NCBI GenBank assembly: GCA_002269645.1
Contig: NIVC01003705.1
Span: 1-34,474 of the forward strand
Direction of reading: 5' to 3'
Length of the DNA: 34,474 bases
Origin: Macrostomum lignano
Lineage: Eukaryota
In this document: piece by piece, positions 5,586 to 34,474 of the stretch
How positions within the stretch are numbered: the stretch's first letter is position 1
How the letters are laid out: each line of letters opens with the position of its first letter
The notes under the pieces: model-generated
Seen by the model: the letters and a program-made list of their open reading frames with translations, nothing else
What the model was told of the DNA's origin: nothing
The model's database searches: none
Program-made: the position numbers and the translations under genes

Positions 5586-6199
5586 CCTTTCAAGCTCGAC
5601 TTTGGCAAAAGTGACAATTCAATTTTGGCAGCCCATAGAAAAAGCATAAGCCTGCCAGCAACATGTCTATGGTCAACTGTGGTAGAATCGGTTAGAGCGT
5701 GCATTCAACCAGGCTGATTGCCTGCACCGACACGCCAGGTGCGCCTGGAAGTTCGGCTTCCATCTTCTCCTTTATCTCCCTCAACCTTATGGTGGGCTTC
5801 TCTTCAACAAACCGAGTCACAGCATTTAACATTGGTGGTGTAAATTTTGGCCTCACGGCTTCCTCCTCGTTGCTTCAGCGCAACGCGATCTTCAGTGACA
5901 AACCTGTGGATAATTGTGTCGGCCGTGGTTCTCTTTATGTCGAGGTCCTTCGCCAGTCGTCTCCAGTCTCTTCCTTCTTGGTAGCTGCGCACCAGCCGTT
6001 CTCGATCCTGCAGCGATATACGCGCGTTCGGCATCTTGTTCGGTTGAGTTGCCAAAATTCGCTCACTTTTGCCAAAGTTGAATGCACGCTCTAACCGATT
6101 CTACCACAGTTGACCATAGACATGTTGCTGGCAGGCGTATGCTTTTTCTATGGGCTGCCAAAATTGAAGTCACTTTTGCCAAAGTCCAGCTTGAAAAGG
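5586..6199 (-). mobile_element. Internally deleted Tc1/mariner-IS630 element with long TIRs and TA TSD
   Basis: TIRs of about 124 bp (5586-5709 / 6077-6199) with about 4 differences. TA at 5584-5585 and 6200-6201. The motif TCACTTTTGCCAAAGT occurs twice at the right end (about 6063 and 6170), an IR/DR-like organisation. Confidence 0.88.
5714..6034 (-). pseudogene. Transposase N-terminal bipartite HTH DNA-binding region; frameshifted; catalytic DDE domain deleted
   Basis: MPNARISLQDRERLVRSYQEGRDWRRLAKDLDIKRTTADTIIHRFVTEDRVALKQRGGSREA. After one extra base in the T-run at 5845-5848 it reads KFTPPMLNAVTRFVEEKPTIRLREIKEKMEAELPGAPGVSVQAIS, then runs into the TIR. Confidence 0.8.
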
Positions 6200-9873: not shown

Positions 9874-12134
9874 AAAGATGGAAACCTAAGCAGATTAGCG
9901 ATTCGCGTCCATAAGCTTCTAGATAGATAGCATTAAATGCCACTGTAATGTATAGCTTTTTGTGGACCAATCAGATTTTTTTCTACTTCAGTGGACGCCC
10001 ATTCGTTGTTTGCACGAATCAAGGCTGCAATTAATTGAATGCTACTCAAAGTAGCAAAGCTTTCTGTTCTATTACTAATACTCAAGAATGATGCAAAGAA
10101 AAATACAATGCGATAGAATAAATGCAAAAGTACAGCAGTCATTGTCTCATTCAGTTGCTTTGATCAAAAAGTAAGTTTATGGCAACAAGTTTATGTCTAA
10201 TGTACGATGGCTAGTATGGTCCAAAAGTATTGTCTATTCAAAACACAGCTACATATAGCTCGTACAGAATACTTTCTCTTTGACACTACGTGGGTTACTT
10301 GACTAAAGAAAGAAAGTCCATAAGCCAATCAGTTGAATGAAGAGAATAGTATTTGTACTTTAAAACTAGCTTTTGTGAGTGGTTGCGCAGAGACTGTTTC
10401 TTAATTTTCACGACTGCATGGTAAATTGAAGAATCAGAATCCGGAAACTTTGAAAACGAATGGCCAAAGAAATACTCTTTTGAATAGAAATTTGATCGAC
10501 ATGTAAGATTGATTCCATTTGTCGCGTGGATCATTTAATCCACAGCCATCAATATTTAACTCCGCTGAGCTGAATTGGGACTGTTTTGATTCGCCTAAGT
10601 TTCTCATTTATGCACATTGGATTGGAAATTCCAATCAAGGTCGATGTAAGTATCCAAAGAGAAATGTAACTCCAGCAATTTCCTGCATGGCTCTACCGAA
10701 ATGCCACTGTATTTGAGCGATCAGGTTTCCCCATTGGTCAGCTAATTGGGGGACAATGTATAGGCTATGTGACACCAAGGGGGCATTTAAAAAACTATCC
10801 CATTTTATACATATGATTGTTGTCTTTTACCTACAAAATATGGGCCAGTCGTATTATTGCTGATTATCTACCAAGAGTATATTGCATAGTATAAGCATGA
10901 ACACAGACATAGCACTGCCGTGTCACTTGTCATAAAAACTGTCAGTGTCACTAACTGCCTCATTTTTAATAATCAAAAACTGCAGACGAGGTCCCGTGGC
11001 ATCAAAACAAGGTGCAACCAAAGTCCAAGTCTCTCTCGGATCAAAATGGAAATTTCATGTCAACTTAAAATATTAGATTGGAACAAAAATATTTCACAGG
11101 ATTGCACGATTGGACAGAATTGCAAAGATCTCTCAGAACTTTTTCGTCGTCAGAAAACAGACCTGAAGATGCCAGTCCGGGTCGCTTTCACAAGACTAAA
11201 ATTTCACAACTTAGAAAACTTAATATAACGAGGACCACGCAAAATTTTCAGCGTTGAGAAATTTCGGTCTTATGAAACCCCTCCCGTCAGCCAAAATCCA
11301 ATGATCTTGTACTTCGACTATATTTAGCATAGTTAGCCACTAAGTGTCCAAACCACATCATGAAGCACTATTTAATTCTTTCCCAGAAACCGCTGACATT
11401 GTTGACAAAAATGTGTAGCTACAGAGTCAAAAAATCAAAAGCCACCATTTAAACTGATAGTACATTTGTCATGTCAAACTGACCGACGCCACCACAAAGA
11501 GGGTTAGAAAGTTGTGTCGCGTGTGGTCAAAAGCAACAGATAAGAGAAAGGTGGTCTCATAACCGTACGAAGTGAACTCAAGCAAAAAAAAACTGCAGAC
11601 TAACATCAAAAAATGCGTTTAGTTATATATCTATACTACTCTGAGCAATTGGCTCTAATTTTTACCGCGATATCTGCTGTATGCATTAAAATTCAAAGGC
11701 CAACAATCCTTGCCTACCGCAGGGTCATTGTTATCTTAAGAATAAAAAAGCTTTTGAAAAGAGCTTGCAAAGACACAAATAACTGTGCATAGAGCCCAGC
11801 AACTTGTACGGGAAGCTATGTTACGGTTAAACAGCGATCATGTACACTAAGCCAGATAGCAACAAGCAAAAAAACAGGAGTTTCACAGCTCGGCTGGGAC
11901 TGCCCGCTGATAAGACCACATAGAAGGCGTTCTTAGATAAGCTGTCCTTAGCGTTGCTGTTAGTCTCAAACACAAAAGCAGGGGAGTCTTCTTCAAAAGC
12001 AGATATAATACGCCAATCAATTTCTGTCCGGCAGTCTTGAAAATCTTTCGCTAAGCACTGAGAAAATTGGAGGTCAGAAGTATAGCAGTCGCGAGCTGTT
12101 TTCCAACGAAGTTCAAGTATTATAGTCTAAAACA

Positions 12135-13574
12135 ATGCCCCGAGTTAAACGGTCTAGTCGGCTGGATTTGGAAGTGACCAGCGAGGAGGATTGGCGCATC
12201 AAGTCTATCATCACTAAATTCTTCCCGACGCATAAACAAATCTGCGAGCTCAAAGATAGACTCAGGGAGGAGATTGAGAAAGGACTCAGCGATGACCCAG
12301 AACAAAGGAAAGCGAGCTCGCTTCAAATGGCTGTCACGTTTGTTCGCGGATTGCTTAACGGTTCCGAGAGAGGAAACTTCTTGGCGCTGGATCTCGGCGG
12401 AACAAACTTTCGAATTCTCGATGTTTCGTTGCGCAGTGGCAGCAGGTGTTTCAGCAGCTGCGAGAACTTTGCCATCCCGACTGAGAGACTCAAGGGAACG
12501 GCAGCCGAGTTGTTTGACTTTATCGCTGATAAGCTGGCCGAGTTCGTCCACAAGGAGAAGCTGGACAGCTCCGAAAAGCGAATTCCGCTCGGATTCACGT
12601 ACTCATACCCTCTGGGACTCACCTCTCTCACTTCCGGTGTGATCGAGCGTTTGAACAAGTCCCTATCAATCAAAGACGGAATCGGAAAAGATCCGGTGAA
12701 GCTTCTGCAAGACGCAATCAACAAACACTCGCTCAAAATCGACGTACTCGCAGTTCTGAACGACACCACTGGAACACTCATGAGTGGTGCATTCATGGAC
12801 GCATCGTGCGGCATCGGGCTCATCATGGGAACCGGCAGCAACGTCTGCTACATGGAGAGAATCTGCAACATTCCAAAGTGGCAGTCTCTGACTGGACATT
12901 CGCCGTCCGAGTTTCAAGAGTACGAATACGTCATTGTGAACACTGAGTGGGGTGCGTTCGGAGACAATGGAGTGATCAAGTTTCTCAAGACTGAGTTCGA
13001 CTTCCAGCTGGATAACGAGTCGCTCTATGCCGGAACGTACACGTTCGAGAAGCTTTTCAGCGGAATGTACCTCGGAGAGCTAGCTCGCGTCACTCTCGTG
13101 AAGCTCTGCGACGAGGGTCTCGTCTTCGGAGGCCAGCCGTCTCCGGCGCTGCTTACACCAGGCAGCTTCCCTTCATCCTTCATCTCTCGAGTAGAGCAGG
13201 ACAATCACCGAGACCTGAGCCAAACATACCGCTGTCTGAAGGAGCTGAAACTGAGCAGCATCTCTGATGAGGACTACCACGTTGTTCGGTACCTGGCGAA
13301 CGCATTGTCGGTGCGCGCAGCTCAGATTGTCGCTGCCGGACTGTCCGTGTTCGTCGAGCGCGTTCAGCGCACTGAGGTCGCAATCGCGGTCGACGGGTCC
13401 CTATTCACCAAACATCCTGTGCTACCAGGTCTGATTCAGGAGTTCCTGGACAAGTACTGCCCAAGAACGCATACAAGGCTAATACACGCTGAGGACGGCA
13501 GCGGCAAGGGCGCGGCCTTCACCGCTGCTGTTGTTGACAGATTTCGAAGGGACGAGACCTCAAATGGCGAGTAA
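12135..13574 (+). CDS. HK: Hexokinase, single-domain ~50 kDa type, intronless, 479 aa (copy 1)
   Basis: Motifs LALDLGGTNFR, PLGFTYSYP, LNDTTGTL, MGTGSN, NTEWGAFG, FEKLFSGMYLGE, VDGSL, EDGSGKGAA. Uninterrupted ORF. AAAACA-ATG start context. Confidence 0.97.
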   Translation: MPRVKRSSRLDLEVTSEEDWRIKSIITKFFPTHKQICELKDRLREEIEKGLSDDPEQRKASSLQMAVTFVRGLLNGSERGNFLALDLGGTNFRILDVSLRSGSRCFSSCENFAIPTERLKGTAAELFDFIADKLAEFVHKEKLDSSEKRIPLGFTYSYPLGLTSLTSGVIERLNKSLSIKDGIGKDPVKLLQDAINKHSLKIDVLAVLNDTTGTLMSGAFMDASCGIGLIMGTGSNVCYMERICNIPKWQSLTGHSPSEFQEYEYVIVNTEWGAFGDNGVIKFLKTEFDFQLDNESLYAGTYTFEKLFSGMYLGELARVTLVKLCDEGLVFGGQPSPALLTPGSFPSSFISRVEQDNHRDLSQTYRCLKELKLSSISDEDYHVVRYLANALSVRAAQIVAAGLSVFVERVQRTEVAIAVDGSLFTKHPVLPGLIQEFLDKYCPRTHTRLIHAEDGSGKGAAFTAAVVDRFRRDETSNGE

Positions 13575-14249
13575 AAGTGAATTATCTTTCTGAGAGCAGG
13601 TTGTGGCAATAGTGCCTTTTTGTTTGCTTTGACTCCCGACTGTGAAAGATCCGAATCTGATCGGAACAAGATCTGCAGGACATCCGCTTTGCTGCTTTGC
13701 TTTTATTGCCCAAGTTGATGCTTAAATATTTTGTCATTCCATTTTGAGTCGAATATCGATCCTATCTTTTTCGATTTGTTTCATTCTCTATAAATTTAGT
13801 CCGACACGGCCAAGTAACACGAAGTTACGAGGTACCATTAATCTACACGATATTGGAGTAAAAGACCCGTTAGCTTTTTGACGCTTAAAGACCTTTTTTC
13901 TATTTTGAACTCCGACAGAAAACACTAAATTCTAATCTATTCGATTGTCGCTGTCTTTTTAAGTAGCCCACTAAATTAAATAAATTTAATGTACTCGTAC
14001 CTGCTACCTTTGCCCCTCAATCACATGCATGTTATTGCTTTGTTCATGCGAAGATACTTGTAAGCGTTGCACAGCTACATGAGCCTAAAAAAGTAGTCTT
14101 AAAAACAAGCGCTTGAATACAAGCAGTTTTTGCTCGGCCAATCGGAAGCTCGCAGATCTAAATCTGGAGTTCTTTATCAATGTATAACATTCGCCCCTGT
14201 CATTGATATTGCAACCTGTCCGCTTTCTTCAGCTTGTTTCAGTTTCTCA

Positions 14250-14994
14250 AATTTCTCCGATAAGCTCAACACACCCTTCTCCGCTGCTTCGATTGCAGTT
14301 GCTAGGGTGAGCGCGTCCGACAGGGTCTTTTTTTATTCTTGCAGCAGTCGTTGCTGGATCAGATGATTCCTGAGGCTAACGAAAAATCAGTTTCTCAGTG
14401 CATCATCTAAAAATCTTTCAAAGCCACTCGTGATAGCCAGCTTCCGTAGACTTGCAAGGAATTCACCGATGGATTCCCCTTTATGCTTAGTCAGGGAAGC
14501 CTCTATGGTCGCTGCGCTCCCCAAGGAAGGGACACTAGTTTAGGCAGCATACAAGTTTAGGGGTAAAAACCCGATTGGAAAGCAGTGATAGGAAAATGCA
14601 ACGTTTATTCATTTCTATGATTGATAACTTTTTAACTAAAAGTCATAGAAAGATGCGGTTTGCACTATTCAACGCAAAACATCGCAGGATCTCAGCGCAA
14701 CTTCTCCAACTCTGCTGCTGTCCACTTTCGGGGAATTGCAGAGATCCATTTTCCAGAAGCTCCGGCTGTGTATATATTATTTTTCCAGTTAGCAAGCTAT
14801 GAAATACGAGAGGTGTTACAAAAGTTCGCGTACAAACTGCTCTAGCGAGAAATCGATAAGCAGCAGCATCATTTCATATTCTATGCCATTCCCCTCAACT
14901 TGTATAGCGGAGTGGGGTGGGGCGGGTGAGTGTCCCTTCCTGGGGAGCGCAGCGACCATAGAGGCTTCCCTGGCTTAGTCCTGCTGTGGAAGTT
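14250..14994 (-). pseudogene. Decayed Ty3/Gypsy LTR-retrotransposon gag fragment, split by a DNA element
   Basis: Removing 14492-14972 plus one TSD restores NFHSRTKHKGESIGEFLASLRKLAITSGFERFLDDALRN*FFVSLRNHLIQQRLLQE*KKTLSDALTLATAIEAAEKG. This fits the FxxRxQxxGES..F...LRxLA..LRD.FV.GL..IQ.RLL gag pattern. In-frame stops at 14389-14387 and 14335-14333. Confidence 0.75.
14492..14972. mobile_element. 481-bp non-autonomous TIR DNA element (hAT- or P-like CAGGG ends)
   Basis: 45/44-bp TIRs CAGGGAAGCCTCTATGGTCGCTGCGCTCCCC(A)AGGAAGGGACACT (14492-14536 / 14929-14972) differing by one base. Flanking direct repeat GCTTAGT (14485-14491, 14973-14979). Confidence 0.85.
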
Positions 14995-15308
14995 TTAGAG
15001 TTTGTAAAAGAGAAGCATTAACTTTAATACGCTCGTAAAACTGGACTAACCGTCTATGGCTAAAACTCCCGTTAAACTGCATAATGATAGGACCAAGGAT
15101 TTTAGGATCATAATGATATTATGATAGGATCACGTGATAAAGTTGTCCTTGGATAGGGCAACAAAAATATCTATTAGAACGAGTACCCTTGCGAAAAAGA
15201 CAAGATGGAAAAGCAAGACCAAGAACTGTTTGAGGAAGGCGGTGAGAATGAGGACAACACAACAGCTTCGGAGCACAAGATCTTGGCGTGGCTAACGGTC
15301 AAAAAATT

Positions 15309-16349
15309 CGCCGAACCAACAACAGGATTAGTATCTGATATAATGCTGACAGAGGTAGGATCATCGGAGCCTTTGAACAAGGGGAGGATTTCACCGCTTT
15401 TGCAGGACATCTCAATGTCAAAAGAACAACAACGTACGAGTATACGACTGTTTGTTCTGGAAAAATCGAAACGCTCCTAAAATGTGGGTCGAAGCGAGTC
15501 GAGTGGAATATGGAGATGCAGGCATTCGTTGAATCTAACCTGCTCATTACGTTAAGGAAATTGAATGCTAATCTGCGGCAACATTTTCCAAATAAGTTTC
15601 AATTCACGGACAATTGTATCAGTGAAAATGGTGCCCTATACAACAGGCAGCTGGCAATGGATCTACCAGCCGGAAAAACACCCCCGGTGATTGACGCGCT
15701 TGGAGTTTTGCGAGTGGGTTTGTTTAGCGGAAGTTCTCACAATCCATAAAATATATTCATCGATGAGTTTGGATTTGATGCCCGATCGTTCCACCGGTTG
15801 CAAGGTCGCTCACGGAGCGGAGAGCACTGTACTGGCAGGGCGGCTTGCGAAAGGGACTGCGCATCACCATTTTCTTAGCTAGATATTTTTCTACGTCAAT
15901 TCTACACGCATAACAAAGGGTGTGACAAAGGAAAATTCCTGCACATCACCATAAAAAACTTTATTGCAGCTTTTCTTGAAGCCAACTGCCACATCACCAT
16001 GATAGCGTAAGTTCTCATATTAATGCCAAAGACTACGGGGTCCCCGGCAATGTCGATGTCAAGAGGCTGCTATCAATGCAGTCCTTTCCTCACGCCTGTT
16101 TAAGAAGCTATTTCGCGCTGGGAGGCTGAGCTGAAGAGTGAATTGGCTCAATAGCAGTCTTTATTCATCGCTCTGACTGCCGAATAACTCGAAGGTTAGA
16201 CACTGGCTGCGCATCGACGGGACACACTTGTCACTACAGTCAACCAAACTTCAGGCTGCATTACAGCCAAAAATTGTACTGAGAGTAGTATAAATCACAT
16301 ATTCACATATGTACTGCGCTGCCTTGTTCGACAAGCAATTGATGGCTGA
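15309..16349 (+). pseudogene. Near full-length decayed Tc1/mariner-IS630 (DDE_3-type) transposase
   Basis: Reconstructed across frames: NRISI*YNADRGRIIGAFEQGEDFTAFAGHLNVKRTTTY (HTH1); FVESNLLITLRKLNANLRQHFPNK (HTH2); IFIDEFGF at 15753-15776 then GRSRSGE; ITM[D]SVSSH near 16000; CSPFLTPV*EAISRW at 16077-16121 with the catalytic E position occupied by TAA (16101-16103); C-terminal YVLRCLVRQAIDG*. Confidence 0.82.
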
Positions 16350-17106
16350 ATGTGAAATTCACAGCCAAGTTCTTGCATCAGTGACTCGATCCTTGAATAT
16401 TTTGAGCCGTGTTTTTAATGCAAAGTGTTTTTTGCGAAGTTGATCTGTAACGTATTCAATTAGGTTTAACGAGCTACAGATCAGCATGAAACATTGTTTG
16501 ACTATGCATTTGCTTTTTCAATTTGCTGTGCAAGCCTTGTGGATTTTTAAGGGTTCGAGGTCATAAAATAGATTCGATCTTTTGCAAGCCGCACAAATAG
16601 AATTCCATAATGCCTAGTTGCGTACCTCGATAAATAAAAAAGACAAACCGCTTTGCACCGTTAACTGCAAGCCCACAAGTGACATTCTGGTGTCATGTGG
16701 TGTAGTTTTGTGTAAGCAAAAGAAACTGCAAGATATGAGAAAAACCTCTGCGATTTCATTAATTCTCACTGAATCTTTTTTCTCACACGGGTGATTCGGC
16801 ATGCCGCAGATGTGCGACTAGAATGAGATGCAAATCAAGCGCAGCCGCGGTCCATTAAGGAAGGAGGCTCACAAGCTGCTTCTGTCTGATCTGACAGAGA
16901 TAGCGAATTCAAGCGAAGCAATTCTCACCTAGTCACTGTACTTTAACATAAACATGAATCAATTTAGCTAAAATATGCAGTTCTAGCCACACCTCTACTC
17001 CTAGGCACCGACAAAGCTATAAGATCTCAGTTCGAAGCAACACTGTGCCCAGTCGCACTATCACGAGTACACATACTTTGCTCTGTACTAGCTTACAAAG
17101 GTCAGG

Positions 17107-18573
17107 ATGAGTCGTATCAGACGATCAAGTCGATTGGATATGGAAGTCACCTCGGAAAAAGATTGGCGAATAAAGTCCATGATAAGCAAGTTCAAAATAA
17201 GCCATCAACAGATCTGCGAGCTCAAAGATAGACTCAGGGAGGAGATTGAGAAAGGACTCAGCGATGACCCAGAACAAAGGAAAGCGAGCTCGCTTCAAAT
17301 GGCTGTCACGTTTGTTCGCGGATTGCTTAACGGTTCCGAGAGAGGAAACTTCTTGGCGCTGGATCTCGGCGGAACAAACTTTCGAATTCTCGATGTTTCG
17401 TTGCGCAGTGGCAGCAGGTGTTTCAGCAGCTGCGAGAACTTTGCCATCCCGACTGAGAGACTCAAGGGAACGGCAGCCGAGTTGTTTGACTTTATCGCTG
17501 ATAAGCTGGCCGAGTTCGTCCACAAGGAGAAGCTGGACAGCTCCGAAAAGCGAATTCCGCTCGGATTCACGTACTCATACCCTCTGGGACTCACCTCTCT
17601 CACTTCCGGTGTGATCGAGCGTTTGAACAAGTCCCTATCAATCAAAGACGGAATCGGAAAAGATCCGGTGAAGCTTCTGCAAGACGCAATCAACAAACAC
17701 TCGCTCAAAATCGACGTACTCGCAGTTCTGAACGACACCACTGGAACACTCATGAGTGGTGCATTCATGGACGCATCGTGCGGCATCGGGCTCATCATGG
17801 GAACCGGCAGCAACGTCTGCTACATGGAGAGAATCTGCAACATTCCAAAGTGGCAGTCTCTGACTGGACATTCGCCGTCCGAGTTTCAAGAGTACGAATA
17901 CGTCATTGTGAACACTGAGTGGGGTGCGTTCGGAGACAATGGAGTGATCAAGTTTCTCAAGACTGAGTTCGACTTCCAGCTGGATAACGAGTCGCTCTAT
18001 GCCGGAACGTACACGTTCGAGAAGCTTTTCAGCGGAATGTACCTCGGAGAGCTGGCTCGCGTCACTCTCGTGAAGCTCTGCGACGAGGGTCTCGTCTTCG
18101 GAGGCCAGCCGTCTCCGGCGCTGCTTACACCAGGCAGCTTCCCTTCATCCTTCATCTCTCGAGTAGAGCAGGACAATCACCGAGACCTGAGCCAAACATA
18201 CCGCTGTCTGAAGGAGCTGAAACTGAGCAGCATCTCTGATGAGGACTACCACGTTGTTCGGTACCTGGCGAACGCTTTGTCGGTGCGCGCAGCTCAGATT
18301 GTCGCTGCCGGACTGTCCGTGTTCGTCGAGCGCATTCAGCGCGCTGAGGTCGCAATCGCGGTTGATGGCTCTCTGTACAAAAAGCACCCGAAATTGCAGT
18401 TTCTCATTCAAGAATTTCTAGACATTCATTGTGAGAATGTTTATACCCACTTGATTCTTGCCGAGGACGGTAGTGGAAAGGGCGCTGCATTTACGGCAGC
18501 TGTGGCCGAAAGGATCAAGACCAAGTCCGACGCGGACGAGTGTTCGACTTCGCAAGACTCGTCGGCTGAATAA
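17107..18573 (+). CDS. HK: Hexokinase, single-domain ~50 kDa type, intronless, 488 aa (copy 2)
   Basis: Same motif set as copy 1, with DGSLYKKHP. Colinear with copy 1 at a constant offset of 4972 bp. Confidence 0.97.
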   Translation: MSRIRRSSRLDMEVTSEKDWRIKSMISKFKISHQQICELKDRLREEIEKGLSDDPEQRKASSLQMAVTFVRGLLNGSERGNFLALDLGGTNFRILDVSLRSGSRCFSSCENFAIPTERLKGTAAELFDFIADKLAEFVHKEKLDSSEKRIPLGFTYSYPLGLTSLTSGVIERLNKSLSIKDGIGKDPVKLLQDAINKHSLKIDVLAVLNDTTGTLMSGAFMDASCGIGLIMGTGSNVCYMERICNIPKWQSLTGHSPSEFQEYEYVIVNTEWGAFGDNGVIKFLKTEFDFQLDNESLYAGTYTFEKLFSGMYLGELARVTLVKLCDEGLVFGGQPSPALLTPGSFPSSFISRVEQDNHRDLSQTYRCLKELKLSSISDEDYHVVRYLANALSVRAAQIVAAGLSVFVERIQRAEVAIAVDGSLYKKHPKLQFLIQEFLDIHCENVYTHLILAEDGSGKGAAFTAAVAERIKTKSDADECSTSQDSSAE

Positions 18574-19827
18574 CCACAATGTTTTATAACTTCTGCTGTG
18601 AAAGCCACTAAAATCTAAAAATATTTGCATCTATACGACCATCTGAATCAAACATTATTGAATAATACCGGTAGCTGTAAAAGTATATGCTCGTACATGT
18701 ACACTGAGCATCATGTTAAAGTTATCGCCCCGAAACCAGTGGTTAACAAGTGACAGCCTTAATACAATTCTAGCCATTACTCTCGACTCTCTCCTCACCA
18801 GCCTAAGCTGTGGGGCCTAGCTTGTGGCGCAAAGCGCATCACTCACAGTTGAGACGACAATCGCGAGGGCTGAGATCAAAGAAAAGTTTTTGGGGTGGAA
18901 ACTTAAAAATGTGATAAAAAACTGGGTGTTTTTTCTGAGTTCACTGAGTTCGCTGAGAATCGCTGACTTAAAATTTAGCCTAAAATCTACTGAAGTAAAT
19001 CTACTGATCTAATGACTCAAATTTGAATTAGTACAGCTCATATGTGATTTTTTACCTTGATTTTTGCTATTGTCCTTCCTTTAAGAGTTCAATAGGTTTA
19101 ATACAATCATTAATCAGATCCTTTTCCGGCGTGAGCACAAGAAGTCAATATAGCCATTATAAATATAAAATTAGCCTAAAAAAATTGAAGGCAAAAACGG
19201 CACTATATGTTGTCAGGATCTGTTGTATATCTGTTGTAAAAATGAAATGACTAATAGCTTCTCCAGACTTCTCGTCTGTAGTTTAAGCCATGAATCAATG
19301 TAGCCATAGGTTTGGATTCAAATTTATTGGTTATTACAGGCGCATGAGTGTGACTATATACACTTGTGTGTGGGCCAGTGTAAATCTGACTAGTTTCCAT
19401 CTCGCTCCCTCATTTTACTACGCTGTGATCACTGCCTCGCAAACTATAGTACTTACAGCTATAACAACTCTTTATTTAATTATTTCATAATAAAAATGTC
19501 TAAAAGTAACACGAACATAATATATATCCACTGCTCAGTGAAAGTGGTCTCTTTTGATATATTTATGTTAGCATGAAAGCCAAGCAAGAATTCTAGTTAT
19601 TGAACTAGCAATCTACGCCCCCCGTAGGGGCGCCAAAGAAATGCAATACACGTTTTTTAATAAGCTACATATATCCTTGAAATCTTAAAAAATCTCCTGT
19701 CAAACCTTGTAAGCCTTGACATGTCAATAATTCCCCCCCACAAGCTTTAACACATCAACTTCCCCCCTTGACATCTCAGCATTACCCCCAATAAGCCTTG
19801 GAAATCTAAAAATATCTGTCAACCTTC

Positions 19828-19887
19828 TAACCCTAACCCTAGCCTAACCCTAACCCTACCCTAACCCTAACCCTAACCTAACCCTAA
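19828..19887. repeat. Interstitial telomere-like (TAACCC)n tract inside A1
   Basis: About 10 imperfect TAACCC units. Shorter copy at 23575-23597 and a degenerate one at about 23978-24025. Confidence 0.9.
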
Positions 19888-20324
19888 AGCATTGAAATTT
19901 CAGTAATTCTCTCTGAGAGTCATTATAGCACTACTACAGCATTATAGCGATTCCCTGCAAGCCTCGACATCGTAGGGATTCCCAAATGAATCTCTTAACT
20001 TCGACATGAAGCTTCTTTTATTTTTTACATTACGCTTTTTTTATCAGCGCCCCCCCGTGGCGAGCCAACAATGAATGCAATAAAAAATTGAGTAAAGTAC
20101 ATGAACTTTGAAGTAGCCTCTGACTTTTGCTTTGACATCTCAGAAACCCCCCCTCCCGTAATCTCAGTTATTCTCTGAGAGCCTTGACGTCTCAGTAATT
20201 CTCCCCAGCACAGCATTATAGCTGCATTTAATTTTTACATGACACCCTTCATGTCTGACATGACGCTTCTTTTATTCTACCATGATGCTTCTTAATATTT
20301 TAAATGACACTTTCATTACTTTTT

Positions 20325-22730
20325 AAATGAGGCTTCTATGATTTTTTACATGACGCTTCTATGATTAATTACATGACGCTTCTATGATTAATTACATGAC
20401 GCTTCTATGATTGTTTACATGACGCTTCTATTATTTTTTAAACGACGTTTCTATGATTTTTTAAATGACGCTTCTATGATTGTTTACATGACGCTTCTAT
20501 GATTGTTTACATGACGCTTCTATGATTGTTTACATGACGCTTCTATGATTTTTTACATGACGCTTCTATGATTTTTTACATGACGCTTCTATGATTGTTT
20601 ACATGACGCTTCTATGATTTTTTACATGACGCTTCTATGATTGTTTACATGACGCTTCTATGATTGTTTACATGACGCTTCTATGATTGTTTACATGACG
20701 CTTCTATGATTTTTTAAACGACGCTTCTATGATTAATTACATGACGCTTCTATGATTGTTTACATGACGCTTCTATGATTTTTTACATGACGCTTCTATG
20801 ATTGTTTACATGACGCTTCTATGATTTTTTACATGACGCTTCTATGATTGTTTACATGACGCTTCTATGATTGTTTACATGACGCTTCTATGATTGTTTA
20901 CATGACGCTTCTATGATTTTTTACATGACGCTTCTATGATTAATTACATGACGCTTCTATGATTTTTTACATGACGCTTCTATGATTGTTTACATGACGC
21001 TTCTATGATTTTTTACATGACGCTTCTATGATTGTTTACATGACGCTTCTATGATTTTTTACATGACGCTTCTATGATTGTTTACATGACGCTTCTATTA
21101 TTTTTTAAACGACGTTTCTATGATTTTTTAAATGACGCTTCTATGATTGTTTACATGACGCTTCTATGATTTTTTACATGACGCTTCAATGATTTTTTAC
21201 ATGACGCTTCTATGGTTTTTTACATGACGCTTCTATGATTGTTTACATGACGCTTCTATGATTGTTTACATGACGCTTCTATGATTGTTTACATGACGCT
21301 TCTATGATTGTTTACATGACGCTTCTATGATTTTTTACATGACGCTTCTATGATTTTTTACATGACGCTTCTATGATTGTTTACATGACGCTTCTATGAT
21401 TTTTTACATGACGCTTCTATGATTGTTTACATGACGCTTCTATGATTGTTTACATGACGCTTCTATGATTGTTTACATGACGCTTCTATGATTTTTTAAA
21501 CGACGCTTCTATGATTAATTACATGACGCTTCTATGATTGTTTACATGACGCTTCTATGATTTTTTACATGACGCTTCTATGATTGTTTACATGACGCTT
21601 CTATGATTTTTTACATGACGCTTCTATGATTGTTTACATGACGCTTCTATGATTGTTTACATGACGCTTCTATGATTGTTTACATGACGCTTCTATGATT
21701 TTTTACATGACGCTTCTATGATTTTTTACATGACGCTTCTATGATCTTTTAAACTCTATGATTTTTACATGACGCTTCTATGATTTTTTACATGACGCTT
21801 CTATGATTGTTTACATGACGCTTCTATGATTTTTTACATGACGCTTCTATGATTGTTTACATGACGCTTCTATGATTTTTTACATGACGCTTCTATGATT
21901 GTTTACATGACGCTTCTATGATTGTTTACATGACGCTTCTATGATTGTTTACATGACGCTTCTATGATTTTTTACATGACGCTTCTATGATTTTTTACAT
22001 GACGCTTCTATGATTTTTTACATGACGCTTCTATGATTTTTTACATGACGCTTCTATCATCTTTTAAACTCTATGATTGTTTACATGACGCTTCTATGAT
22101 TTTTTACATGACGCTTCTATGATTGTTTACATGACGCTTCTATGATTTTTTACATGACGCTTCTATGATTGTTTACATGACGCTTCTATGATTTTTTACA
22201 TGACGCTTCTATGATTGTTTACATGACGCTTCTATGATTTTTTACATGACGCTTCTATGATTGTTTACATGACGCTTCTATGATTGTTTACATGACACTT
22301 CTATGATTGTTTACATGACGCTTCTATGATTGTTTACATGACGCTTCTATGATTGTTTACATGACGCTTCTATGATTTTTTACATGACGCTTCTATGATT
22401 TTTTACAGGACGCTTCTATGATTTTTTACATGACGCTTCTATGAGCTTTTAAACTCTATGATTTTTACATGACGCTTCTATGATTTTTTAAATGACGCTT
22501 CTATGGTTGTTTACATGACGCTTCTATGATTTTTTACATGACGCTTCTATGATTTTTTACATGACGCTTCTATGATTTTTTACATGACGCTTCTATGATT
22601 GTTTACATGACGCTTCTATGATTTTTTACATGACGCTTCTATGATTGTTTACATGACGCTTCTATGATTGTTTACATGACGCTTCAATGATTGTTTACAT
22701 GACGCTTCTATGATTTTTTACATGACGCCT
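20325..22730. repeat. 23-bp minisatellite CATGACGCTTCTATGATT(G/T)TTTA, about 105 units
   Basis: Direct tandem repeat, period 23 (e.g. CATG at 20533 and 20556). Two dominant variants, ATTGTTTA and ATTTTTTA. Confidence 0.97.
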
Positions 22731-23324: not shown

Positions 23325-24479
23325 ATTTTCATTTTTAGTATATAGGACTAGCAATCAGCGCCCCCCGTTGGGGAGCCAAAAAATACAGCACAAGTTTTTT
23401 AATAAACTACATATAAGCGTCTCTTTGCATTATACCTCAGCAACCCCTTGTAAGCCTTGACATGCCAGCAATTCCTCCCCCCCACAAGCCTTAGCATATC
23501 AACTCCCCCTTGACATCTTAGCAATTCCCCCCATAAGCCTTGAAATCTTAAAAAATCTGTTAACCTTCTAAACCTAACCCTAACCCTAACCCTAACCTTA
23601 AAGCATTGACATTTCAGTAATTCTCTCCGAGAGTCATTATAGCACTACAGCATTATAGCGATTCCCTGCAAGCCTCGACATCGTAGGGATTCCCAAATGA
23701 ATCTCTTAACTTCGACATGAAGCTTCTTTTATTTTTTACATTACACTTTATCTATCAGCGATCCTTCCCGTGAAGAGCCAACAAATAATGAAAACATTTT
23801 TCAATAAACTACATCATCTACATGTAGCTTGTGAATTTAGCCTTGACATCTCGGTTATTCCCCCGTGAGCCTTGACATCTCAGCTATTCCCCCCGTAAGC
23901 CTTGTCATGTTAGCGATGCCCCCCATAAACCTTGATATCTGAAAAATCCCCTGGTTATCTTGAAACCCGCTAAAATCTAACCCTCAACCCAAACCTGACC
24001 TAAACCTAACTTTAACCCAACCTAAAGCCTTGAATCTCAGCAATTCTTCTCCCCTAAGCCTTGACATTTTAGTGATTCCTTATTTAAGAATCACAGCACC
24101 ATAGCGATTCCCTCCAAGCCTTGGCATCGTAGCAATTCCCAAATGAATCTTTTAACTTTGACATAATGACTCTTCTTTTATGTACACATAGTGCTTCTTC
24201 TCTTTTTTACATGACTCTTCTTCTATCAGCGCCCCCTCCCCCGTAGCGAGCCAACAAAGAATGTAATAAAAAATTGAGTAAACTACATGTACTTTGAAGT
24301 AGCTTCTGACGTTTGCTACTTTGCTTCTCTGGCATCTCAGAAACCGCCTCCCCATAATCTCAGTTATTCTCCGTGAGCCTTGACATCTTAGTAATTCTCC
24401 CCAGCACAGCACAATAGCTTCTTTTAATTTTTACATGACACTTCTTTCATGTCTGACATGACGCTTCTTTTATTCTTCC

Positions 24480-25146
24480 ATGACGCTTCTATGATTTCTC
24501 AAATGACACTTCCATTAGTTTTTATATGAGGCTTCTATGATTGTTTATATGACGCTTCTTTGATTTTTACATGACGCTTCTACGATTGTTTGCATGACGC
24601 TTCCATGATTTTTTCATGTCGCTTCTATGATTTTTATATAACGCTTCTATGATTGTTTACATGACGTTTCTTTGATTGTTTACATGACGCTTCTATGATT
24701 TTTATAAGACGCTTCTACGATTTTTTACATGACGCTTCTATGATTGTTTTCATGACGCTTCTATGATTTTTTACATGACGCTTCTATGATTTTTACATGA
24801 CGCTTCTATGATTTTTTCATGACGCTTCTATGATTTTTACATGACGCTTCTACGATTGTTTGCCTGACGCTTCTATGATTGTTTGCATGACGCTTCTATG
24901 ATTGTTTACATGACGCTTCTATGATTTTTACATGACGCTTCTATGATTGTTTACATGACGCTTCTATGATTGTTTATATGACGCTTCTTTGATTTTTACA
25001 TGACGCTTCTATGATTGTTTACAATACGCTTCTATGATTTTTTACATGACACTTCTATGATTGTTTACATGACGCTTCTATGATTGTTTGCATGACGCTT
25101 CTATGATTTTTACATGACGCTTCTATGATTTTTACATGACGCTTCT
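24480..25146. repeat. Same 23-bp CATGACGCTTCTATGATT minisatellite, about 29 units, more degenerate
   Basis: Direct tandem repeat with frequent 22-bp variants. Confidence 0.95.
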
Positions 25147-25899: not shown

Positions 25900-26334
25900 A
25901 AGACAGCAAGCATCCCCCAGATAGCAAGCATCCTCCAGATTGCAAGCAACCCCCGGATAGCAAGCATCCCCCAGATAGCAAGCATCCCCCAGATAGCAAG
26001 CATCCCCCAGATAGCAAGCATCCTCCAGATTGCAAGCAACCCCCGGATAGCAAGCATCCCCCAGATAGCAAGCATCCCCCAGATAGCAAGCATCCCCTAG
26101 ATAGCAACCATCCCCAGATAGCAAGCATCCCCCAGATAGCAAGCATCCCTCAGATAGCAAGCATCCCCCAGATAGCAAGCATCCCCCAGATAGCAAGCAT
26201 CCCTCAGATAGCAAGCATCCCCCAGATAACAAGCATCCCCCAGATAGCAAGCATCCCCCAGATAGCAAGCATCCCCCAGTTAGCAAGCATCCCCTACATA
26301 GATAGCATCCCCAAATAGCAAGCATCCACCAGAC
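25900..26334. repeat. 18-bp minisatellite CAGATAGCAAGCATCCCC, about 24 units
   Basis: Period 18 (gives PPDSKH / IASIPQ ORF-track repeats), with occasional 17-bp units. Confidence 0.97.
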
Positions 26335-26421
26335 AATAAGTAGCTAGTGCGACAATTTCCTTAGCATTATAGTGGCTCCTTTAAAATTCGCTTACTTTTA
26401 CGTTTGAAATTGTGTAAATTT

Positions 26422-29400
26422 TATGTTTGACATGGTGGCTCTTTTATGTTCTACATGGCAACTCTTTTATGTTTGAAACAATGGCTTTTTAATGTCTGAC
26501 AGGGTGGCTCTTTTATGTTTGACATGGTGGCTCTTTATTGTTTGACATGGTGGCTCTTTAATGTTTAACCTGGTGGCTCTTTTATGTTTGACACAGTGGC
26601 CCTTTAATGTTCGACAAAGTGGCTATTTAATGTTTGACAAGGTGGCTTTTAAATGTTTGACATGGTGGCTCCTTAATGTTCGAAATGGTGGCTCTTTAAT
26701 GTATGACATAAAGACACATATAAATGTTTGACATGGTGGCTCTTTATTGTTTGACATAGTGGCTCTTTAATGATCGACAAAGTGGCTCTTTAATGTTCTT
26801 CATGGTATAGCTCTTTTATGTTCGACATGGTGGCTCTTAAATGTTTGACATGGTGGCTCTTTAATGTTAGAAATGGTGGCTCTTTTGTTTGACATGGTGG
26901 CTCTTTAATATTCTACATTGTGGCTCTTAAGTGTTCGAAATGGTGGATCTTTTAGGTTTGACATGATGGCTGTTTAATGTTTGACATGGTAGCTCTTTTA
27001 TGTTGACATGGTAGCTCTTTTAGGTTTGACATGGTGGCTTTTTAATGTTCAGTATGATGGCTCTTTAATGTTCAACATAGTGGCTCTTTAATATTCTACA
27101 TGGTGGCTCTTTTATGTTTAACATGGTGGCTCTTTTGTTTTACATGGTGGCTCTTTAATGTTTTACATTGTGGCTCTTAAGTGTTCGACATGGTGGCTCT
27201 TTTAGGTTTGACATGGTGGCTCTTTTATATTCTACATTTTAGCTCTTAAATTTTCGACATGGTGGCTCTTTTTGGTTTGACATGGTGGCTCTTTTATGCT
27301 TGATATGGTGGCTCTTTAATGTTTAACATGGTGACTTTTAATGTTAGACATGGTGGCTCTTTAATGTTCGACATGGTGGCTCTTTGATATTCGACAGGGT
27401 GGCTCTTAAATGTTTGATATGGTGGCTCTTTATGTTTGACATGTTGGCTCTTTTGTGTTTGACATGGTGGCTCTTTCATGTTTGACATGGTGGCTCTTTT
27501 TTGTTCGAAATGGTGGCTCTTTTTTGTTCTACATAGTAACTCTTATATCTGATACGGTGGCTTTTTTAATGTCTGACATGTTGGCTCTTTTATGTTCAAA
27601 ATGGTGGCTCTTTTATGTTTGACATGGTGGCTCTTTAATGATTGACATGGTGGCTCTTTTATGTTCGACATGGTGGCTCTTTAATGTTCGAAATGGTGGC
27701 TTTTTAATGTTCAAAATAGTGGCTCTTTAATGTCAGACATGGTGGCTCTTTAATGTTCGACATAGTGGCTCTTTAATGTTAGACATGGTGGCTCTTCTAT
27801 GTTTGACATGGTGGCTCTTCTATTTTTGACATGGTGGCTCTTTAATGTTCGACATGGTGGTCCTTTAATTTTTGACATAGTGGCTCTTTACTGTTAGACA
27901 TGGTGGCTCTTTAATGTTCGATACGGTGGCACTTTAATGTTTGACATCATGCCAGATTTATGTTAGACATGGTGGCTCTTTAATGTTCGACATGGTGGCT
28001 CTTTTAGGTTTGACATGTTGGCTCTTTAATGTTCGATATGGTGGCACTTTAATGTTTGACATCATGCCAGATTTATGTTTGACATGGTGGCTCTTTAATG
28101 TTCGACTTGGTGGCTCTTTTAGGTTTGACATGGTGGCTCTTTAATGTTCGACATGGTGGTTCTTTAATGTTCTACATGGTGGCCCTTTAATGTTCGACAT
28201 GGTGGCTCTTTACTGTTAGACATGGTGGCTCTTTAATGTTCGATATGGTGGCACTTTAATGTTTGACATCATGCCAGATTTATGTTTGACATGGTGGCTC
28301 TTTAATGTTCGACATGGTGGCTCTTTTAGGTTTGACATGGTGGCTCTTTAATGTTCGACATGGTGGTTCTTTAATGTTCGACATGGTGGCTCTTTTATGT
28401 TCTACATGGTGGCCCTTTAATGTTCGACATGGTGGCTCTTTAATGTTCGATATGGTGGCACTTTAATGTTTGACATCATGCCAGATTTATGTTTGACATG
28501 GTGGCTCTTTTCTGTTAGACATGGTGGGTCTTTTTGGTTTGACATGATGGCACTTTTATGTTTTGACATGGCGGCTCTTTAATGTTTTACATGGTGGCTC
28601 TTTAATGTTCGACATGGTGGCTCTTTAATGTTCGACATGGTGGCTCTTTAATGATTGACATGGTGGCTCTTTTATGTTCGACATGGTGGCTCTTTAATGT
28701 TCGAAATGGTGGCTTTTTAATGTTCAAAATAGTGGCTCTTTTATGTCAGACATGGTGGCTCTTTAATGTTCGACATAGTGGCTCTTTAATGTTAGACATG
28801 GTGGCTCTTCTATGTTTGACATGGTGGCTCTTCTATTTTTGACATGGTGGCTCTTTAATGTTCGACATGGTGGTCCTTTAATTTTTGACATAGTGGCTCT
28901 TTACTGTTAGACATGGTGGCTCTTTAATGTTCGATACGGTGGCACTTTAATGTTTGACATCATGCCAGATTTATGTTAGACATGGTGGCTCTTTAATGTT
29001 CGACATGGTGGCTCTTTTAGGTTTGACATGTTGGCTCTTTAATGTTCGATATGGTGGCACTTTAATGTTTGACATCATGCCAGATTTATGTTTGACATGG
29101 TGGCTCTTTAATGTTCGACTTGGTGGCTCTTTTAGGTTTGACATGGTGGCTCTTTAATGTTCGACATGGTGGTTCTTTAATGTTCTACATGGTGGCCCTT
29201 TAATGTTCGACATGGTGGCTCTTTACTGTTAGACATGGTGGCTCTTTAATGTTCGATATGGTGGCACTTTAATGTTTGACATCATGCCAGATTTATGTTT
29301 GACATGGTGGCTCTTTAATGTTCGACATGGTGGCTCTTTTAGGTTTGACATGGTGGCTCTTTAATGTTCGACATGGTGGTTCTTTAATGTTCGACATGGT

Positions 29401-30800
29401 GGCTCTTTTATGTTCTACATGGTGGCTCTTTAATGTTCGATATGGTGGCACTTTAATGTTTGACATCATGCCAGATTTATGTTTGACATGGTGGCTCTTT
29501 TCTGTTAGACATGGTGGGTCTTTTTGGTTTGACATGATGGCACTTTTATGTTTTGACATGGCGGCTCTTTAATGTTTTACATGGTGGCTCTTTAATGTTC
29601 GACATGGTGGCTCTTTAATGTTCGACATGGTGGCTCTTTAATGTTTGAACTGGTGGCTCTTTAATGTTTGACATGGTGGCTCTTTAATGTTCGACATGGT
29701 GGCTCTTTAATGTTTGACATAAAGTCACATATATGTTTGACATGGTGGCTCTTAAATGTTTGACATAGTGGCTCTTTAATGTTCGACATGGTGGCTCTTA
29801 AATGTTTGACATGGTGGCTCTTTAATATTCTACATGGTGGCTCTTTTATGTTCCACATGGTGGCTCTTTAATGTTCTTCATGGTATAGCTCTTTTATGTT
29901 AGACATGGTGGCTCTTTAATGTTCGACATAGTGGCTTTTTAAGGTTTGAAATGGTAACTCTTTAATGTTTGACATAAAGTCACATATATGTTTGACATGG
30001 TGGCTCCTAAATGTTTGACATGGTGGTTCTTTATGTTTGACATGGTGGCTCTTTTATTTTCGACATGGTGGCTCTTTTATGTTTAACATGGTGGCTCTTT
30101 AATGTTCGACAAAGTGGCTCTTTAATGTTTGACATGGTGGCTCTTAAATGTTTGACATGGTGGCTCTTTAATGTTCGACATGGTGGCTCTTTAATGTTCG
30201 AAATGGTGCTCTTAAATGTTCGACATGGTGGCTCTTTAATGTTTGACATGGTGGCTTCTAATTGTTTGACATGGTGGCTCTTAAATGTTCAAAATGGTGC
30301 TCTTTAATGTTCGAAATGGTGGCTCTTTAATGTTCGAAATGGTGGCTCTTAAATGTTCAAAATGGTGGCTCTTTAATGTTCGAAATGGTGGCTCTTTAAT
30401 GTTCGAAATGGTGGCTCTTTATGTTTGACATGGTGGCTCTTTTATGTTCGACATGGTGGCTCTTTTATGTTTGACATGGTGGCTCTTTATGTTTGACATG
30501 GTGGCTCTTTTATGTTTGACATGGCGGCTCTTTTATGTTTGACATGGTGGCTCTTTTATGTTCGACATGGTGGCTCTTTTATGTTTGACAGGGTGGCTCT
30601 TAAATGTTCGACATGGTGGCTCTTTTATGTTTGACAGGGTGGCTCTTAAATGTTTGACATGGTGGCTCTTTAATGTTCTTCATGGTGGCTCTTCAATATT
30701 CTACATGGTGGCTCTTTAATGTTCGACATGGTGGCTCTTCTATGTTTGATATGGTAACTCTTTTATGTTCGATATGTTGGCTCTTCTATGTTTGACATTG
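26422..30800. repeat. 23-bp minisatellite GACATGGTGGCTCTTTAATGTT(C/T), about 190 units
   Basis: Direct tandem repeat, period 23, with recurrent variant monomers such as GACATCATGCCAGATTTATGTT. Confidence 0.97.
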
Positions 30801-30849
30801 CGCTTCTTTGATGTTTAGCAGTTTTGTTGTGTTTTTAAGGTGTTTTAAT

Positions 30850-31554: not shown

Positions 31555-32130
31555 AAGACCACAAGCATCCCCAGATAGCAAGCATCCTCCAGATAGCAAG
31601 CATTCTCCCAGATAGCAAGCATTTCCCAGATAGCAAGCATCCCCAAGATAGCAAGCATCCTCCAGATAGCAAGCATCCCCAGATAGCAAGCATCCCCCAG
31701 ATAGCAAGCATCCCCCAGATAGCAAACATCCCCCAGATAGCAAGCATTCCCCAGATAGCAAAGCATTCCGCAGATAGCAAGCATCCCCCAGATAGCAAGC
31801 ATCCCCAAGATAGCAAGCATCCCTCAGATAGCAAGCATACCCCAAGATAGCAAGCATCCCTCAGATAGCAAGCATACCCCAGATAGCAAGCATCCCCAGA
31901 TAGCAAGCATCACTCAGATAGCAAGCATCCCTCAGATAGCAAGCATCCACCAGATAGCAAGCATCCCCAGATAGCAAACATCCCCCAGATAGCAAGCATC
32001 CCCCAGATAGCAAGCATTCCCCAGATAGCAAGCATTCCCCAGATAGCAAGCATCCCCAGAAAGCAAGCATCCTCCAAATAGCAAGCATCCCCAAGTAGAT
32101 AGCATCCCCAAATAGCAACCATCCACCAGA
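31555..32130. repeat. 18/17-bp CAGATAGCAAGCATCCCC minisatellite, about 32 units
   Basis: Direct tandem repeat with mixed 17- and 18-bp units. Confidence 0.96.
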
Positions 32131-32227
32131 CAATAAGTAGCTAGAGCGACAATTTCCTTAGCTTTATAGTGGCTCCTTTAAATTGCATGGCGCTTTATAC
32201 CTTTACATTTGAAATTGGATATCTTGA

Positions 32228-34474
32228 ATGTTTGACATGGTGGCTCTTTTATGTTTGACATAGTGGCTCTTCTATGTTTGACATGGTGGCTCTTTTATGT
32301 TTGACATAGTGGCTCTTTTATGTTCGACATGGTGGCTCTTCTATGTTTGACATGGTGGCTTTTTTAGGTTTGACATGGTGGCTCTTTTATGTTTGACATG
32401 TTGACTTTTTTATGTTCGACACGGTGGCTTTTTAATGTTCGACATGGTGGCTCTTTTAGGTTTGAACCGGTGGCTCTTTAATGTTTGACATGGTTGCTCT
32501 TTAATGTTCGACATGGTGGCTCTTTTATGTTCGACATGGTGGCTCTTTAATGTTTGACATGGTGGCCCTTTAATGGTTAACATGGCGGCTCTTTAATTTT
32601 CGAAATGGTGGCTCCTTAATTTTCGAAATGGTGGCTGTTTTATGTTGACATGGTGGCTCTTTAATGTTCGACATGGTGGCTCTTTAATGTTTGACATGGT
32701 GTCTGTTTTATGTTTGATATGGTGGCTCTTTAATGTTCGACATGGTGGCTCTTTAATGTTTGACATGGTAACTCTTTTATGTTTGATATGGTGGCTCTTT
32801 AATGTTCGACATGGTGGCTCTTTAATGTTCGACATGGTGGCTCTTAATGTTCGACATGGTGGCTCTTTAATTTTTAACATGGTGACTCTTTTATGTTCGA
32901 CATGGTGGCTCTTTATGTTTGACATAGTGGCTCTTCTATGTTTGACATGGTGGCTCTTTAATGTTTGACATGGTGGCTCCTATTATGTTTGACATGGTGG
33001 CTCTTCTATGTTTGACATGGTGGCTTTTTTAGGTTTGACATGGTGGCTCTTTTATGTTTGACATGTTGGCTTTTTAATGTTCGACATGGTGGCTTTTTAA
33101 TGTTCGACATGGTGGCTCCTTTAGGTTTGAAATGGTGGCTCTTTAATATTTGACAAGGTGGCTCTTTAATGTTCGACATGGTGCTCTTTTAGTTTGAACC
33201 GGTGGCTCTTTAATGTTTGACATGGTGTCTGTTTTATGTTTGACATGGTGGCTCTTTAATGTTCGACAGGGTGGCTCTTTAATGTTCGACATGGTGGCTC
33301 TTTAATTTTTAACATGGTGACTCTTTTATGTTCGACATGGTGGCTCCTTAAGGTTTGAAATATTGGCTCTTTAATGTTTAACATGGTGGCTTTTCTATGT
33401 TCGACATGGTGGCTTTTCTATGTTCGACATGGTGGCTCTTGTATGTTCGACATGGTGGCTCTTTTAATGGTCGACATGGTGGCTCTTTAATGTTCTTCAT
33501 GTTGGCTCTTTTATGTTTGACATGGTGGCTTTTTATGTTTGACATGGTGCTCTTTTATGTTCTACATAGCTGCTCTTTTATGTTCGACATTGTGGCTCTT
33601 GTATGTTCGACAGGGTCGCTCTTTTAGGTTTGAAATGGTGCTCTTTAATATTTGACAAGGTGGCCCTTTAATGTTTAACATGGCGGCTCTTAAATTTTCG
33701 AAATGGTGGCTGTTTTATATTTGACATGGTGGCTCTTTAATGTTCTTAATGGTGTCTGTTTTATGTTTGACATGGTTGCTCTTTTATGTTCGACATGGTG
33801 GCTCTTTAATTTTAACATGGTAACTCTTTATGTTTGATATGGTGGCTCTTTTATGTTCGACATGGTGGCTCTTGTATGTTCGACATGGTGGCTTCTTTAG
33901 GTTTGAAATGGTGGCTCTTTAATATTTGACAAGGTGGCTCTTTAATGTTCGACATGGTGCTCTTTTAGGTTTGAAATGGTGGCTCTTTAATATTTGACAA
34001 GGTGGCTCTTTTAATGTTTGACATGGTGGCTCTTTAATGTTCGACATGGTGGCTCTTTAATGTTTGACATGGTAACTCTTTTATGTTTGATATGGTGGCT
34101 CTTTTATGTTCGACATGGTGGCTCTAATGTTTGACATGTGGCTCTTTAATGTTTGACATGGTAACTCTTTTATGTTTGATATGGTGGCTCTTTAATGTTC
34201 GACATGGTGGCTCTTGTATGTTCGACATGGTGGCTTCTTTAGTTTGAAATGGTGGCTCTTTAATATTTGACAAGGTGGCTCTTTAATGTTTGACATGGTG
34301 GCTCTTTAATGTTTGACATGGTGGCTCTTTAGGTTTGAAATGGTGGCTTTTTAATGTTTGACAATGTGGCTCTTAATGTTTGACATGGTGGCTTTTTAAT
34401 GTTCGACATGGTGGCTCTTTTAGGTTTGAACCGGTGGCTCTTTAATGTTTGACATGGTGGCTCTTTAATGTTTG
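32228..34474. repeat. 23-bp GACATGGTGGCTCTTTAATGTT minisatellite, about 97 units in the window
   Basis: Direct tandem repeat continuing to the window end. Confidence 0.97.

Follow-up and report, generated by a model that had tools for sequence, protein, structure and literature searches.

A tandem pair of old intronless hexokinase genes in Macrostomum lignano with a young, near-identical core, probably evolving in concert by interlocus gene conversion

Classic cases of interlocus gene conversion include human HBG1/HBG2, RHD/RHCE, the red and green opsins, and CYP21A2/CYP21A1P, as well as Drosophila Hsp70. In Trypanosoma brucei, the hexokinase genes TbHK1 and TbHK2 are adjacent and show few differences, located mostly in the C-terminal tail, and TbHK2 differs in activity in vitro. 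The products of these two genes are 98% identical, and their unique 3' untranslated regions (UTRs) permit gene-specific RNA interference (RNAi) (PMC3195984). Interlocus gene conversion between paralogs is also documented for duplicated histones in yeast (PMC4700949). For animal hexokinases or for Macrostomum, our literature search found no report of gene conversion. Here we analyse two tandem hexokinase genes, HK-A and HK-B, of the flatworm Macrostomum lignano. They lie on contig NIVC01003705.1 of assembly Mlig_3_7 (GCA_002269645.1), the entire length of which (34,474 bp) was analysed and is called the window below. HK-A and HK-B are probably old paralogs, both intronless, and their core probably undergoes concerted evolution through interlocus gene conversion between homology cliffs.

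HK-B lies 4972 bp downstream of HK-A on the same strand, and the two open reading frames (ORFs) are in ungapped register at that offset. The genes and their segments are the following, in window coordinates:

12135..13574, plus strand: HK-A, intronless hexokinase gene, 479 amino acids (uninterrupted ORF, Pfam and PDB matches; annotated in GenBank)
17107..18573, plus strand: HK-B, intronless hexokinase gene, 488 amino acids (uninterrupted ORF, Pfam matches; unannotated on all four contigs compared below)
12240..13390, plus strand: putative conversion tract in HK-A, codons 36-419 (4 differences from HK-B; perfect run 12240-13081)
17212..18362, plus strand: putative conversion tract in HK-B (aligned to HK-A at offset 4972)
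12135..12239, plus strand: diverged N-terminal 35 codons of HK-A (HK-B counterpart 17107-17211)
13391..13574, plus strand: diverged C-terminal segment of HK-A (HK-B counterpart 18363-18573)

The initial annotation of this locus had reported a 1151-bp tract in which the two genes differ at only four positions, and this count is exact: the differences are located at 13082 and 13304 (both synonymous), 13362 (Val/Ile), and 13371 (Thr/Ala), and the core (codons 36-419) is approximately 99.7% identical between HK-A and HK-B. The 842 bp of perfect identity mentioned at the same time were recovered to the base (12240-13081). Both ends of the genes are very different in this respect. In the N-terminal 105 bp (12135-12239), 37 of the 105 nucleotides are mismatched; 24 of the 35 codons keep their residue, 14 of them with synonymous differences, exactly as first counted. 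In C-terminal codons 420-470, 64 of the 155 alignable nucleotides are mismatched, and this segment is followed by indels near the stop codon and by tails of unequal length. The flanks, which had also been described as diverged, are indeed so: a sensitive blastn search (word size 7) covering 4 kb on either side found nothing outside the coding sequence (CDS), homology between the two genes beginning at the ATG and fading at the C-terminus. Both tract edges are abrupt, as mismatches at 12229-12239 and at almost every third base from 13391 abut the tract, and no zone of intermediate divergence exists outside it at either boundary.

Divergence at synonymous (dS, pS) and non-synonymous (dN, pN) sites was estimated with the Nei-Gojobori method:

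Core: dS 0.011, dN 0.002
N-terminal end: pS 0.89, pN 0.22
C-terminal end: pS above 1 (ends overall approximately 0.9-1.1), pN 0.21

At both ends, dN is about 0.25 and synonymous sites are saturated; such a low dN, together with an open frame, implies long purifying selection on both ends of both genes. The tract, for its part, shows 2 differences at 268 synonymous sites (3 in a segment extending one base beyond it). As identity spans synonymous sites, constraint at the protein level is no explanation for the core. Constraint at the nucleotide level, in which purifying selection would act on the core through an overlapping antisense ORF or an RNA structure without any exchange between the genes, is hardly credible either. 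Antisense ORFs of 143-172 amino acids do overlap the core, but they cover the tract only partly and are a usual by-product of a GC-rich coding frame, no Rfam match was found, and so few synonymous differences next to saturated adjoining sites effectively refute this explanation. The longest perfect run also far exceeds the maximum of 181 obtained when the variable sites were permuted 20,000 times (a GENECONV-type comparison; analytic P about 1e-40), and when codons for conserved amino acids alone are considered, up to 272 consecutive codons are identical, versus a permutation maximum of 107. By these measures, very old ends flank a very young core. The saturated ends, the core dS of approximately 0.01, and the recurrence of the mosaic on four contigs fit only one reading, the old duplicate pair initially proposed, with a core that was homogenised recently.

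These four contigs, all from one assembly, carry eight copies (one HK-A and one HK-B each). They are the window, NIVC01003845 (hereafter L001), NIVC01001189 (L003, 341 kb), and NIVC01004366 (L004). M. lignano is a hidden tetraploid, with extra large chromosomes in DV1, and the redundancy of the assembly is known. The tandem pair is present with the same mosaic on all four separately assembled contigs, with boundaries that match exactly apart from a single L003 site, and the occurrence of the mosaic on three further contigs makes a one-off misassembly unlikely. The window and L004 are almost identical throughout. L003 differs from the window by approximately 1-2.6% upstream of HK-A, while L001 differs by approximately 1.5% in the spacer between the genes and 2-2.5% downstream, and has approximately 1.46 kb of extra spacer. 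By their sequence divergence, which amounts to 1-2.5% in blocks of non-coding DNA, the four contigs represent at least three haplotypes or homeologs, themselves recombinant mosaics. The ends nevertheless group strictly by paralog on all four contigs, with 35-37 (N-terminal) and 64-65 (C-terminal) differences between paralogs versus 0-2 within. Both HK-A ends are A-type and both HK-B ends are B-type on every contig, which indicates that the flanks were not exchanged. Unequal crossing-over was rejected, as it would alter the copy number and leave a chimeric gene, while here each gene keeps both of its own ends.

Mlig_3_7 was built with Canu 1.4 from PacBio reads, polished with Pilon using Illumina DNA and RNA-seq data, and scaffolded with SSPACE; Canu was run at errorRate 0.04 on PacBio RS reads, and Pilon used multi-mapping Illumina DNA/RNA-seq reads (PMC5730564). 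Such settings could favour an artefact of assembly, read correction or polishing, in which the true cores are more different and were blended by the pipeline. The consensus is indeed imperfect in this region, as single-base deletions were left uncorrected in A4 homopolymers of HK-A on L001 (L001 ~7323, equivalent to window 12574) and of HK-B on L004 (L004 ~15061, HK-B codon 30). Both deletions are probably PacBio consensus errors, and the former is the reason why HK-A on L001 is annotated as a 264-amino-acid fragment. We nonetheless consider it extremely unlikely that the mosaic is an artefact. The tract (1.15 kb) and the spacing of the genes (5 kb) are shorter than long reads, both copies lie in one contig with unique flanks, and the four contigs agree on the boundaries to the base, the L003 site excepted. 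Besides, blending is unable to yield an in-frame switch from approximately 62% to 100% identity within 1-3 bp, and copy-specific substitutions persist in the core (13362, 13082, and 13371), which shows that the copies were not simply merged. At most, a small true divergence may have been lowered or single variants misplaced, but the mosaic would not have been created in this way.

Variable sites in the core, among the eight copies, are 12629, 12812, 13010, 13082, 13304, 13362, and 13371, plus the 1-bp deletion at 12574 in HK-A of L001. According to the initial annotation, mismatches cluster at the 3' edge of the tract. This holds in the window contig (P about 0.005) but is less tidy over the four contigs: the 13304 variant is private to the window's HK-A copy, the differences at 13082 and 13371 are absent from one HK-B copy (that of L001, which is A-type at both sites), three further core sites vary more 5', and 13362 is the sole core site separating every HK-A from every HK-B copy. 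The core of HK-B on L001 shows 2-4 differences from the HK-A copies, versus 4-5 from the other HK-B copies. In addition, a T at 12629, which is a non-CpG site, is common to HK-B of L001 and HK-A of L003, that is, to copies of both genes on different contigs, and all four combinations of 12629 and 13362 are present (a four-gamete violation). Finally, at 12239, which defines the 5' boundary on the other contigs, HK-A of L003 shows the G typical of HK-B. The shared T at 12629 and the G at 12239 point to at least one further exchange, later than the main homogenisation. This later event appears to have copied at least 391 bp (12239-12629) from an HK-B donor into HK-A of L003, ending before 12812. 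Together with the A-like core of HK-B on L001, these variants bear the shared-polymorphism signature of continuing exchange between the two loci, subject to the caveat that one pipeline produced all eight copies.

The claim that the core was homogenised repeatedly is thus supported in part, by the shared T at 12629 with its four-gamete violation, by the G at 12239, and by the abrupt boundaries. The competing scenario is a one-off replacement, in which the genes diverged over their full length until one recent event overwrote 1.15 kb, with no long-term concerted evolution; possible routes include homeologous gene conversion, and repair of the template-switch or microhomology-mediated break-induced replication (MMBIR) type. 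A single event ending at arbitrary points would leave abrupt boundaries without an intermediate zone, as observed, and the difference at 13362, fixed between HK-A and HK-B on all four contigs, implies that the main homogenisation is older than the haplotype split. We nevertheless regard a single replacement as unlikely, because at least a second exchange is needed to account for the polymorphism shared at 12629 together with the B-type base at 12239 in HK-A of L003, and because the slightly more numerous differences inside the 3' edge are expected from overlapping tracts. Moreover, a divergence of about 30% strongly suppresses homologous repair between two sequences, which makes a first-time conversion across an already saturated core improbable.

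Recurrent interlocus gene conversion could have operated as follows. A break in one copy would be repaired by synthesis-dependent copying from the paralog located 5 kb away or, alternatively, from its counterpart on the sister chromatid or the homologous chromosome, resulting in the non-reciprocal replacement of up to about 1.15 kb with unexchanged flanks. Extension of the heteroduplex into sequence that is only approximately 60-65% identical would fail, and tracts would thus be bounded by homology cliffs. The ends would have escaped early, long ago, after which the boundary would be self-reinforcing, and the core would have been kept similar since the duplication by repeated events, instead of being rescued once from saturation. 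Differences are slightly more frequent inside the 3' edge, a trend that weakens when all copies are considered and that might then reflect either inward erosion or overlapping tracts.

Transfer probably took place in both directions. GC content at third codon positions (GC3) reaches 0.66 in the core, versus 0.60 in the ends of HK-A and 0.51 in those of HK-B; the core being nearer to the A ends is suggestive of HK-A as the commoner donor, or of GC-biased conversion. Among conserved degenerate codons of the ends, 42 of the 57 differ between the paralogs, versus 32.8 +/- 3.5 expected under independent draws. Selection against homology was set aside as a cause of this excess, which we attribute to the differing GC3 of the A and B ends, the sample being small. 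The donor could also have been a third sequence, such as a hexokinase paralog located elsewhere or a complementary DNA (cDNA) of one, that overwrote both cores. Unannotated copies are possible in this assembly, as HK-B itself shows, and cDNA-templated repair would be traceless in two intronless genes. Such a donor is very unlikely, however: the protein search recovered no other recorded protein with this core, and two events with the same end points would be needed where one event within the pair suffices.

Several points weigh against concerted evolution by gene conversion as we describe it, or limit its details. Amino-acid composition, and possibly GC-biased conversion, confound the direction of transfer suggested by GC3. 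Repeats that are nearly identical can be blended during Canu read correction, and all four contigs come from one Canu and Pilon pipeline applied to the same reads; the exact identity of the cores and the placement of single variants (e.g. the T at 12629) are thus provisional. The comparison covers one species and one assembly. It relies on 2-5 differences per comparison, and the core divergence between HK-A and HK-B is statistically indistinguishable from that between haplotypes. Lastly, the fixation of 13362 on all four contigs implies that no event has covered this site since the haplotype split.

Homology cliffs may not be the only force acting on the boundaries, which could also be held by selection. 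The two genes would then form a long-lived isoenzyme pair with one concertedly evolving catalytic core, conversion tracts crossing a boundary being eliminated; in a variant of this scenario, HK-B is poorly expressed, with a core that is continually restored by copying from HK-A or that acts as a reservoir for HK-A. We consider selected boundaries rather doubtful. If they were real, an N-terminal helix and a C-terminal segment of approximately 60 residues of its own would let the two enzymes, like TbHK1/TbHK2, differ in how they are regulated, where they localise, or which partners they have. In the secondary structure of an AlphaFold2 model (predicted local distance difference test, pLDDT, 83; predicted template modelling score, pTM, 0.83), the 5' tract boundary falls within a helix (33-50) and the 3' boundary corresponds to the end of a strand (414-420), and neither edge therefore coincides with a domain border. 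The private ends of HK-B vary among contigs (K30I, F437L, N444D, and E478*), while those of HK-A show one synonymous change, which hints that present constraint may be weaker on HK-B than on HK-A. The HK-B ORF is intact on two of the four contigs; on L001, a GAG>TAG change at L001 14812-14814 (codon 478) causes the loss of the last 11 residues.

Both HK-A and HK-B match Pfam families Hexokinase_1 (E 1e-58) and Hexokinase_2 (E 1e-69) over their full length, and both proteins match human HK1 in PDB at E 6e-177, with approximately 40% identity to either half of HK1. Intact motifs in both copies include the ATP loop LDLGGTNFR, NDT (with the catalytic Asp), GTGSN, TEWGAFG, EK..GMYLGE, and DGSGKGAA. 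The glucose-contact motif WTKGF, on the other hand, is replaced by LNKSL at residues 173-177 of both copies (window 12651-12665 and 17623-17637): Lys is retained, but Trp is changed to Leu and Thr to Asn, while W-T-K is found in 24 of the 24 other hexokinases aligned. This replacement may alter the substrate affinity or specificity of HK-A and HK-B. M. lignano genes have a mean of approximately 4.9 introns, and the intronless pair may descend from an ancient retrocopy.

The HK-A protein is recorded letter for letter on three contigs of GCA_002269645.1, including NIVC01003705.1. The exact HK-B protein is absent from the protein collection searched, in which no gene is called at its position on any of the four contigs. 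Besides the window's own protein, a search with the full-length sequence found nothing above approximately 40% identity, a profile search with two C-terminal segments of 136-145 amino acids recovered just 8 distant fragments, and a metagenome scan for close relatives gave no match.

The two genes are separated by the following segment:

13575..17106, no strand: spacer between HK-A and HK-B, without homology to either flank of the pair

The spacer contains an inverted repeat (14486-14530 / 14934-14978) with 45-nucleotide arms that are 89% complementary and 403 nucleotides apart. A second inverted repeat (5618-5709 / 6077-6168), with 92-nucleotide arms, is 99% complementary, and its arms are 367 nucleotides apart. 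Both pairs may be elements resembling miniature inverted-repeat transposable elements (MITEs). The insert of about 1.46 kb in the L001 spacer (L001 ~9893-11355, at window ~15085) carries a 355-amino-acid ORF (L001 10241-11308) with a weak, sub-threshold match to a QRICH1 domain, and a perfect 36-nucleotide hairpin at L001 9898-9999; it is possibly a mobile-element fragment. No Pfam match above family thresholds was obtained for ten ORFs of the flanks and spacer, and scans for Rfam families and tRNAs found none.

Downstream of HK-B, at a distance of about 1.25 kb, lies a degenerate telomere-type (CCCTAA)n block (window 19827-19887), and a second, short one is found 3.7 kb further (window 23578-23595). 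Telomere-type blocks are also present on L001 (16121-16138) and L004 (17726-17743) and absent from L003, where homology to the window stops at about 19604 and is followed by an SH3-SH2-tyrosine-kinase gene. The block either is an interstitial telomere repeat at a site where haplotypes or homeologs differ in structure, or indicates a subtelomeric position. A telomere block of 60 bp is too small for fluorescence in situ hybridization (FISH) to show. Published FISH revealed no interstitial telomere clusters in M. lignano. The last 14 kb of the contig are almost entirely satellite DNA (20258-22728, 24417-25146, 26419-30816, 32222-34474; 25901-26333, 31562-32130), with two different 23-bp units (ACATGACGCTTCTATGATTTTTT and TTTAATGTTTGACATGGTGGCTC) and one 18-bp unit (AGATAGCAAGCATCCCCC). 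These arrays are strongly asymmetric between strands and show higher-order periodicity at 68-91 bp.

The hexokinase pair adds one more instance to a well-known process, classic interlocus gene conversion, and raises no new question of molecular evolution. It does provide a clean illustration of partial concerted evolution in a hidden-polyploid animal for which several haplotypes can be compared. It also has practical value for annotation, HK-B being missing from GenBank on four contigs and HK-A being reduced to a fragment on L001, and for reagent design. Over codons 36-419, short reads, RNAi triggers, in situ probes, quantitative polymerase chain reaction (qPCR) primers, and guides for clustered regularly interspaced short palindromic repeats (CRISPR) editing cannot separate HK-A from HK-B; sequence specific to either gene is confined to the UTRs, the initial 105 bp, and the final ~180 bp.

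As in the classic cases, the HK pair combines a contiguous tract of near-identity, synonymous sites included, with otherwise diverged paralogs; the tract has sharp edges and a length of about 1 kb, the copies are closely linked and in the same orientation, and a polymorphism is common to both paralogs. It differs from these cases in that full saturation of the ends and about 0.3% divergence in the core make for an unusually extreme contrast, and in that the tract lies entirely within the CDS of intronless genes. Compared with the vertebrate 100-kDa hexokinases (HK1-3 and HKDC1) and the 50-kDa glucokinase, the flatworm enzymes have the same two Pfam domains and share about 38-41% identity with either half, but their genes are intronless, they are single 50-kDa units, and they carry LNKSL in place of WTKGF. 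The closest hexokinase analogue of the flatworm pair is TbHK1/TbHK2, which nevertheless belongs to an unrelated lineage, arose by an independent duplication, and is without an anciently diverged N-terminus.

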